From Macrostomum hystrix (taxonomy: Eukaryota > Animalia > Platyhelminthes), in NCBI GenBank assembly GCA_950097015.1, contig CATNEN010000034.1:558001-622000 (forward strand): DNA of 64,000 bases. Reading direction: 5' to 3'. The notes beneath the pieces were generated by a model that was not told the DNA's origin, made no database searches, and saw only the letters and a program-made list of their open reading frames with translations. Below, piece after piece: positions 58,943-61,900 of this stretch (position 1 is the first letter of the stretch; each line of letters opens with the position of its first letter). Made by a program: the position numbers and the translations under genes.

Positions 58943-61900
58943 ATGGGTCGCTCTCGCTCTCCAGTTAGGTAAGTACAAGATTCAAGAATGGGTCTTTTAT
59001 TTATTGTTTAGATTATAGTCTAAATATGTACCTGTTTCCCAACAGATATTGAGAGACATATTCAAAATAATCACTCCAAATTTTTAACAAAAGCACCCCA
59101 TCAAGTTTTCTTTTTCCTTTTATGCAATTCTACGCAATCGATTAGCTTAAAATAAAAAAATAATTATTAAGCTCCATGCTGTGGTTACCAATATATGTTT
59201 TTTTAAAGTTTGCTTGGCAATGTTGGAATTGTTTATCTATTTAACCTCATTTAAATTGTTTGCATTATTAAAGCTACATTAAACTGTTGATTCCTTTGAA
59301 ATTTGTGCCAGATTTTTACTTGAGTCCTAGCTTTTTAAAGACACCTTGCAAATCTCAGAGGATGCTTTTTTCCCAAGTTATTCTCTTCTAAATCATGTTT
59401 TACCATTTACAATTTTGTGCTTTTTGCTAAGGGTATCAATCTGTTTCATACGCCACGCCTAAGCATTAATCAGTAGCACAACAAAATTTTTGCTGCTTTC
59501 TACCTCATAACTATGCTTTAAAATGACTGCTCTGGTGACAACCGAAGTATACTTCCTGAGATATTCACACCCCAAGTTTGTTTCATTGTAGTCATAGTGC
59601 AGCCCTCTTCAAATCTCATTAAAACAATTTCATTAAAATATGATTTAAACAATCTATGCTACAAAAAAATAATTTCAATAAATTTTTGAGGGCTGCAAGC
59701 AGTGGCACATAATTTGGTGATGCTATAGACCATTGCAAACAAAAAGGCAATTCTGCTATTTTACTGACTCCTGAGAACACATGTACACAAATACTGTATG
59801 CAAGCATGTGTTCATATAGGTGTATACATCTGCCTTGACTTTCTCATTGTCAGGCAGTGTACATTTTTCTATGCCTTAGAGTTTGGCCCTCAATTGCACA
59901 AATGGCATGACAAGCCCCAAGCCAAATTAATGTGGCCTAGCCACGGAATCAAACTTAGGGACCTTGGTGCAAGAGGCAAATGTTTTTTAACTGCTCTTCC
60001 ACTGACCCCCCTCAATTTAAAATAAGCATCAAGCACAGTTTGCCTATTAATTGAATGAAAATAAGAGCAAGCTGCTTGAGATTGAAAGTGTTAAGACCTA
60101 AAAACTAATGCAAACTCAGTATATTTGGCTTTTGTTGTGAAAATACTACTCATATAATAAGAAAAAATAGTGTTACTGCTGCTTTTCAATTAATTACACT
60201 TACTGAATTTACTTGTAGAATTGTTATAATAGGAATTCATTAATTCTCAATGTTAAATAGCTGGTTAGAATTTGTAGCATATGCTTTCACACTAGAATGC
60301 TCAGCAGATTATAAAATGAGTGTTACTTTCATCTAGTGTTAGTGTTACTTTCATTATTAAAGCAATATTATGACAAAAATGATCATTTATTAACAGCAAT
60401 TTACAAGCTTGATATTCATCTTCACAAGTTGTCAATCTTTGCATTTGTGAATATATAATATAGCTCAGTGACCTACAGTGACAGTCATAACTGCAACCTA
60501 AATAAGCAGTTACTTGTTGTTCATGTTAATTTTTAATTGATAACAAAAGATGTTCCATATAAACATTTTATTTGGCAATCAATACAAACTAGATTTCCTC
60601 AACCAATCTAAACCAGGCGTTATCGCAGCAGCGGTCGCGATCGATCTCGTTCACGTTCTCGCGATCGCGATCAAAAATCTGATTATCGCAATCGAGGCAG
60701 CAATGACCGGGGTCGCGGTGGCAGAGGCGGCGGCGGTGGTTTCGTCGGAGGCTTCGGCGGAGGCGGCGGTCGCTCGCAGGACATGGCCGGTGCCGGGTTG
60801 CGCAAGCCGCGCTGGGACACAATGAGTTTAGAAAAATTTCAAAAAGAATTCTACGTCGAATCCGATGCTGTTCGCAATCGACCCGAAGCTGAGGTGCGCG
60901 CCTTTATGGAACAGTGGGGCATCACAGTGCAGGGCCAGGGCAGCCCCAAGCCCTTGTTCAACTTCTCCGAGTGCCCGTTTCCTGCCGATATTCAGCAGGT
61001 CCTGGCCCAGCAGGGCTGGTCCCAGCCTACTCCAATCCAGAGTATGGGCTTTCCGGCTGCCATGAGCGGTCGCGACGTAGTTGGCGTTGCCCGCACTGGC
61101 AGCGGAAAAACTGCCGCTTTCCTGTTGCCCTCAATAGTGCACATCGCCGCCCAGCCGCCGCTGCGTCGTGACGACGGCCCAGTGTGCCTGGTGCTTGTGC
61201 CAACCAGAGAGCTGGCCCAACAGGTGCAACAGGTGGCTAATACCTTTGGCTTGCCTGTCGGCATTCGCAATGTCTGCGTCTATGGCGGTGCTTCAAAGGG
61301 CGGCCAGATTCGAGAGCTTATGGCCAGGCCCGGTATCATCATTGCCACGCCAGGTCGCCTGCTGGACCTGCTAGAGATGGGCAAGACCAACCTGCGCCGC
61401 TGCACCTACCTGGTGATGGACGAGGCCGACAGGTAAAATGAACTCGGTCACCTAACAAAAATAGCCAGATAGATAAGTTACTGTGGTGACCCAAAAAACC
61501 TTTGTGGTGGCCAATTACACTTAACCCAGTAGCTCAGTATTCTATTGTTTGTTGTTTTTTAATTAAGGCTGTGTACATAAATTAGGCTGTTTAACAACCC
61601 TATTTTTCAACCCATCTCAGGATGCTGGACATGGGCTTCGAGCCGCAGATCAGGCGCATTGTGGACCAAGTGCGGCCGGATCGCCAGACTCTTATGTGGT
61701 CAGCAACCTGGCCAAAGGAGGTTCAAGCGTTGGCCCGGGATTATCTCAAAGACTTCATTAAGGTGACCATCGGCTCGCAGGAGCTATCGGCCAATCCCAA
61801 CATTACGCAGCATGTTGAAGTCTGCGAAGAATACGAAAAGGAGCAACTGCTGTTCCGACTGCTGCCACAGATTAGCTACACTGGCGCCAAGATCTTAGTG

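Follow-up and report, generated by a model that had tools for sequence, protein, structure and literature searches.

The window analyzed here is the whole of a 64,000-nucleotide stretch of the flatworm Macrostomum hystrix (contig CATNEN010000034.1, forward-strand positions 558,001 to 622,000), and the element in question is a short interspersed nuclear element (SINE) with three diverged copies in it, A, B and C, all on the minus strand. A DEAD-box helicase gene on the plus strand has its first recognizable coding exon at 60783 onward; copy C is antisense to this exon and about 770 bp upstream of it, in what may be an intron, a 5' UTR or a promoter-flanking region. An earlier note on this DNA had described a tRNA-headed SINE joined to a box H/ACA module with a Cajal body (CAB) box, of the kind found in small Cajal body-specific RNAs (scaRNAs). 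The SINE half of that description stood, carried by the A and B boxes, the tail and the target-site duplications; the H/ACA half fell for want of an H box, a suitable fold, covariation and a match in Rfam. The three stretches are very probably old insertions of a tRNA-like-headed, non-autonomous SINE of about 340–360 bp, abundant and recently active, and their H/ACA likeness is incidental. The copies and their parts are as follows.

59665–60016, minus strand: copy C, full-length and old, with about 76% identity to the consensus, delimited by BLAST with flanks against 30 other copies
59931–60010, minus strand: tRNA-like head of copy C, with an A-box-like string at 60001–59991 and a B-box-like string at 59955–59945, mapped via a family alignment (A2)
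59871–59908, minus strand: 'hairpin 1' of copy C, AUGCC...GGCAU; the family form is GUGC...GCAC, with four closing pairs only
59864–59870, minus strand: hinge of copy C, AGAAAAA, containing the AGAAAA 'H box', which is private to this copy
59823–59863, minus strand: hairpin 2 of copy C, UGUACA-CUGCC-UGAC, a 9-nt loop with UGAG at 59848–59840, and GUCA-x-GGCAG-A-UGUAxA; the conserved core hairpin of the family
59817–59823, minus strand: 'ACA-CCU' of copy C, within the conserved ACACCUGUGUG string, the ACA itself at 59823–59821
59693–59735, minus strand: remnant of the 3' stem-loop of copy C (consensus CUGCGGG...CCCGCAG), before the (ATT)n tail
47015–47280, minus strand: copy B, matching consensus 2–282 at 80% identity, decayed or lost beyond 282, between minisatellite arrays
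47129–47089, minus strand: hairpin 2 of copy B, weakened (z −2.0)
34689–34860, minus strand: copy A, the most decayed, recognizable over consensus 109–226, with a head that has diverged strongly and a hairpin 2 that lacks its lower stem
19166–19267, plus strand: a fourth SINE fragment, consensus 41–137 at 79% identity

The earlier note had placed three diverged minus-strand copies near these positions, and both alignment and pattern counting bear it out: the three align at 66% mean column identity, the best-kept block reading CTGCCTGA-AATGAGAAAGTCA...CAGATGTA-ACACCTGTGTG, and a 20-nt core pattern is found three times in the window, where shuffling leads one to expect 0.04 occurrences. The motifs reported for copy C are all present (the A- and B-box-like strings, AUGCC/GGCAU, AGAAAA, hairpin 2 with its AAUGAGAAA loop, and ACA-CCU), and the UGAG-containing loop and ACACCU are kept in all three copies. 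The fourth fragment was absent from that list, and the extent given for copy C, 59715–60012, was too short: the SINE continues for about 135–160 nt past the ACA. Homology of copy C with other copies ends at 60012–60016 on the 5' side and, with some uncertainty, between 59665 and 59688 on the 3' side; the copy has no clear target-site duplication.

Copy number was established in the source genome of the window, 220 Mb in 42 contigs, with 40 matches scored in each search (253-nt query, head, core and tail) and the candidate totals being first-look counts. The 253-nt query from copy C gave 3160 candidates, and all 40 scored matches were nearly full-length, at 76–83% identity; the 98-nt tail gave 762 candidates, the 77-nt core 910 and the 77-nt head 1103. 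An element of three copies, as first supposed, is refuted by these totals of 762 to 3160 according to query. The best matches to the tail, core and head queries are 94–100% identical, and the scored matches all belong to one family spread over many contigs. Every locus fetched via the tail or the core holds a complete head-body-tail element, often 96–98% identical to a 360-nt consensus. The SINE family has well over a thousand copies, with young members among them. A search for sequencing runs of the organism returned none of RNA, only DNA or unclassified contig runs. Contigs from the DNA runs, placed on copy C (59300–60400), pile up exactly on the core and head in all runs, among them one that carries the label of a second species from the same study, which indicates that the family is common to at least one relative.

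With a consensus of about 340–360 bp, the element falls under the limit of about 600 bp for SINEs, and it is interspersed at high copy number. A tRNA-like head bearing the A and B boxes is followed by a body whose central hairpin is very stable, then by a 3' stem-loop, and last by the (ATT)n tail and a target-site duplication. Alignments of copies with their flanks fix both ends: the element begins GGGGGTCGGTGG... or GGGGGTCGGTGGCAGAGCGG... and ends ...GCCCGCAGCCCTCCTGCA, after which comes (ATT)n. The 3' end folds into a CUGCGGG/CCCGCAG stem-loop, which precedes CCCTCCTGCA(ATT)n; in RNA letters, the string after the stem is CCCUCCUGCA(AUU)n. The tail varies from 3 to more than 13 units and precedes the duplication. 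In the same alignments, the sequence directly upstream of the SINE can be seen by eye to be duplicated after the tail, and a script found target-site duplications of 7–16 bp, mostly 10–16, in 40 of 58 non-redundant full-length copies. The consensus A box, TGGCAGAGCGG at 10–20, agrees with 8 of the 9 specified positions of TRGCNNAGTGG, and the B box, AGTTCGATTCC at 54–64, with 8 of the 9 of GGTTCGANNCC; starting at positions 10 and 54, the two boxes lie at tRNA-like spacing. The family consensus contains no internal TTTT. Interspersion, a fixed 5' end, A/B-box-like strings, a stem-loop with (ATT)n, target-site duplications and the lack of an internal terminator are all direct observations on the copies, and the three properties that the earlier note had proposed to check genome-wide, namely copy number, duplications and the 3' tail, each came out as in a SINE. 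With its ends, tail, duplications and core hairpin defined, this young and abundant family is useful for repeat-masking the source genome and for reading other findings in it.

A route of propagation can be proposed from these features. RNA polymerase III would start at the internal A/B-box promoter and read through the whole SINE, the consensus being free of internal T4 terminators. A partner long interspersed nuclear element (LINE) would supply the reverse transcriptase, which would recognize the 3' stem-loop and the AUU repeat, and the SINE RNA would be copied into a staggered nick by target-primed reverse transcription, giving rise to the duplication. The core hairpin may aid the stability or mobilization of the source RNA; active source copies would need it, and inserted copies would then decay neutrally. 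Such decay is the simplest reading of the drop in hairpin 2 stability with copy age, from −28.2 kcal/mol (z −4.4) in a young copy through −18.4 kcal/mol (z −3.8) in copy C and z −2.0 in copy B to z −0.5 in copy A, where the signal is gone. Reverse-transcriptase matches in the genome gave 1998 first-look candidates, with at least 150 above the Pfam cut-off, nearly all without stops; the frames span 950–2050 amino acids in several size classes. So many intact frames point to numerous potentially active retroelements, any of which may be a partner of the SINE.

Several results weigh against this account. Run on the window and on 13 loci holding young copies, ARAGORN reported no tRNA, and at E values up to 10 the heads of copy C and of one young copy drew no match from the Rfam tRNA model, so that the label 'tRNA-derived' is drawn only from the presence and spacing of the two promoter boxes. 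RNA polymerase III transcription is likewise putative, as are the ends of the RNA. Genome searches with the tail only returned SINE copies and no LINE with the same tail, and the one LINE 3' flank compared (L094) has no similarity to the SINE tail. Finally, the 58 copies (alignment A2) were gathered by three similarity searches, so that some selection bias enters the figures for regional divergence; it bears less on the contrast between shared and private variants.

In the 'stringent' LINE-dependent tRNA-derived SINEs, the 3' stem-loop and a short tandem-repeat tail are copied from the 3' end of a LINE, the eel pair UnaSINE1/UnaL2 being the textbook case. The present family resembles them in its length of about 350 bp, A/B boxes, lineage-specific body and 3' stem-loop with (ATT)n, as well as in its variable target-site duplications, more than 1000 copies and young subfamilies. 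It differs in that its head is too diverged for tRNA finders and in that the SINE is known without its LINE. Platypus snoRTEs, which are retroposons headed by a small nucleolar RNA (snoRNA) and mobilized by RTE, derive from bona fide snoRNAs recognized by snoRNA models. They share with the present family the retroposition of small-RNA-like units to high copy number; unlike them, the SINE has an RNA polymerase III-type, tRNA-like head and matches no snoRNA model.

Within the body, a central block of 50 nt, made up of a 15-bp hairpin with the loop GAUGAGAAA and the following ACACCUGUGUG, is nearly unchanged between subfamilies. When variants common to three or more copies are taken as differences between source genes, the block from UGUACA to ACACCUGUGUG has 6 of 1666 shared-variant cells, compared to 123 of 4318 in the head, hairpin 1 and the TG-rich body (odds ratio 0.12, p ~1e-11). 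Private, post-insertion mutations in the block are 0.57-fold lower (p 0.004), a difference that may in part reflect how copies were selected. Near-invariance between subfamilies suggests that active source copies probably need the block. Tentatively, and with the balance still tilted the other way, it may be a functional RNA module of these copies, extendable to a helix of about 23 bp, that serves as a site for a LINE or host protein or as a stabilizing or processing element, and it may perhaps be an undescribed SINE central domain.

Conserved central domains define several SINE superfamilies, e.g., CORE, V, Deu, Ceph, Meta and Nin-DC (PMC4824008, PMC4758252), and the function of these domains is still an open question (PMC4824008). 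The present family is similar to them in that a tRNA-like head is followed by a block of about 50 nt that is near-invariant between subfamilies while its neighbors vary; the likeness is one of layout, and the conservation was observed at the level of one genome and one related species label rather than between phyla. The core string had no match in a literature search, the consensus sequences of SINE papers lying outside the text searched. Two metagenome scans with the core pattern yielded nothing in the first and three 20–22-nt chance matches, without flanking similarity, in the second. A young family with a clear hairpin would make a workable test case for the function of SINE central domains.

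A functional box H/ACA-CAB domain, carried or mimicked by the SINE, is highly improbable; such a domain would recruit dyskerin and WDR79 and stabilize a processed sub-RNA or target it to Cajal bodies. Copy C, taken alone, has every motif of such a domain in the right order, and the UGAG loop, GAUGAGAAA or AAUGAGAAA, tops a strong hairpin in all three window copies and in 53 of the 58 full-length ones, with ACACC following the hairpin in 50 of the 58. Set against this is the hinge, whose consensus is AGUGAAA, not ANANNA: 34 of the 58 copies read GGCAC-AGTGAAA-TGTACA and the remainder are close variants. An ANANNA hexamer occurs in the hinge of only three copies, each time through a private change, leaving 55 without an H box; the same holds for copies B and C, whose ACAAGA and AGAAAA are private mutations. 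Shared variants (those in at least three copies) amount to 10.9% in the hinge, the highest value of any segment, compared to 0.36% in hairpin 2 with ACACCUGUGUG. The 'H box' position is thus the least constrained segment between subfamilies, where the earlier note had looked for excess conservation relative to the flanks. UGAG and ACA are conserved only as parts of the 50-nt block, which includes the stems.

The two hairpins of the supposed module fare no better. About 90% of copies have the four outer pairs of hairpin 1, and 2 of the 58 scored have the fifth, a C-G in copies A and C; the hairpin is absent from the minimum-energy fold of the consensus. The compensatory pair reported there comes down to one double change, the A-U of copy C, in 1441 cells, a count reached by 182 of 500 shuffles, and the covariation score of the model in the earlier note is 0.028, against 0.029 in shuffles. 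Under an alternative, extended-hairpin model, covariation was no better than in shuffles, and the C-to-T change of copy C is 'compensated' there too; since the same change fits both models, an old, transition-rich copy evidently yields such pairs with ease. Hairpin 2 forms one continuous stem of 15 bp, with a 1-nt bulge at two points, and lacks any internal loop suited to be a pseudouridylation pocket. Pairing of GGCACAGUG with CAC-CUGUGU(G), seen in the folds of the consensus and of a young copy, lengthens hairpin 2 to about 23 bp (−28.2 kcal/mol, z −4.4). The probability of being unpaired in the consensus fold is 0.02–0.23 for the hinge AGUG and 0.05–0.45 for ACACCU; base pairs between hinge and ACA are predicted, and these would not be the single-stranded boxes of an H/ACA RNA. 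The ACACC is moreover about 150 nt from the 3' end of the SINE and mostly paired in the fold.

Rfam gave no match in the whole window at gathering thresholds and, for copy C and one young copy, no H/ACA, tRNA or ribozyme match at E values up to 10. Absent covariation, an unconserved hinge and no Rfam match are results that the earlier note had itself named as refuting. Matches of these two copies to MIR398, mir-297 and the archaeal sR19 (E 0.4–9) were rejected as chance-level noise, and a C/D k-turn reading, suggested by the weak sR19 match, was rejected for lack of model support.

Human AluACA RNAs offer a precedent for such a domain, and some Alu-derived H/ACA RNAs have atypical 5' hairpins (PMC5207380). 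They are H/ACA RNAs that arise through processing of intronic Alu elements' right arms in sense-oriented introns of RNA polymerase II transcripts, and their assembly is coupled to RNA polymerase II elongation (PMC5207380). Like the present SINE, AluACA RNAs are SINE-derived, have two hairpins and carry a UGAG-type motif in the loop that caps the 3' hairpin, with an ACA after it; their H and ACA boxes are genuine, and their ends fall 3 nt past the ACA (PMC5207380). The family described here, by contrast, has no H box, an internal ACA and a paired hinge and ACA. The known H/ACA route runs through sense-oriented RNA polymerase II introns (PMC5207380), and neither an RNA polymerase III SINE transcript nor an antisense intronic copy fits it. 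At the level of sequence the H/ACA-CAB module is largely refuted, and the likeness of copy C to one is a coincidence of a SINE hairpin with private hinge mutations, not a dyskerin/WDR79-binding module; the UGAG apical loop is the only H/ACA or scaRNA feature that holds family-wide and, as a 4-mer in a 9-nt loop, it is weak evidence. Removing this false lead has little importance beyond annotation.

An origin as a fragment or non-autonomous derivative of a DNA transposon (a miniature inverted-repeat transposable element), or as a part of the surrounding minisatellite cassettes, would accord with the position of copies A and B between large minisatellite arrays and with one locus (L006–L008) in which the SINE lies inside a tandem unit of about 1.2–1.6 kb. 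It too has next to no probability: the copies lack terminal inverted repeats and have a defined 5' end and an (ATT)n tail of variable length, the duplications differ in length and sequence among the 40 of 58 copies that have them, and the family is dispersed over many contigs. The tail, the variable duplications and the dispersal are marks of LINE-mediated retroposition.

Least credible of all, the SINE would belong with the ribozyme-bearing retroelements, like retrozymes or Sm-alpha, and CUGA...GAUGAGAAA would be a hammerhead remnant. CUGACGAUGAG in the loop region recalls a hammerhead core, but Rfam found no ribozyme at gathering thresholds in the window or at E values up to 10 in two copies, and the CUGANGA-like and GAAA-like strings lie too close together for a helix II. 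A hammerhead or retrozyme reading of CUGACGAUGAGAAA was rejected on the same counts, lacking model support and helix II.

Within the SINE family, an insert of about 20–25 nt (GGGGCGCAGCCGCGGAGAGAAGGC) between head and body (consensus ~77–122; copy C 59909–59930) separates two groups: most young copies carry it, and copy C and several older copies lack it. At G000:C34:6389098-6395232 (L006–L008), three near-identical copies lie on the same strand, 1.25–1.64 kb apart, each flanked by a short repeat of the ACAGGCTAACCACCTACAAC type, the SINE having travelled with a local tandem duplication. Among the 58 copies, CpG positions of the consensus diverge 2–4 times faster than non-CpG positions in older members (e.g., 0.17–0.22 vs. 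0.03–0.08), the signature of germ-line CpG methylation and deamination in the source genome. Run X4, which has a different species label from the same study, contains a 204-nt contig identical to 60006–60209 and ending at the 5' edge of the SINE, together with a diverged contig over 59464–59614; the two species labels may stand for very close relatives or for a mixed sample.

The rest of the window holds the neighboring genes listed below and is crowded with long minisatellite arrays, some of them seen as repetitive open reading frames.

60783–62170, plus strand: DDX5-like DEAD-box helicase (DEAD and Helicase_C domains)
25193–28006, minus strand: a second DEAD-box helicase (Helicase_C; DDX6-like by eye)
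3237–3782, plus strand: mitochondrial carrier protein
31149–34000 (16-bp period from 31149) and 35742–38415: long minisatellite arrays
6265–7713, 10793–11981, 12558–13352, 44050–44900, 45300–46700, 47290–47400 and 47776–48492: further minisatellite arrays, seen as repetitive open reading frames

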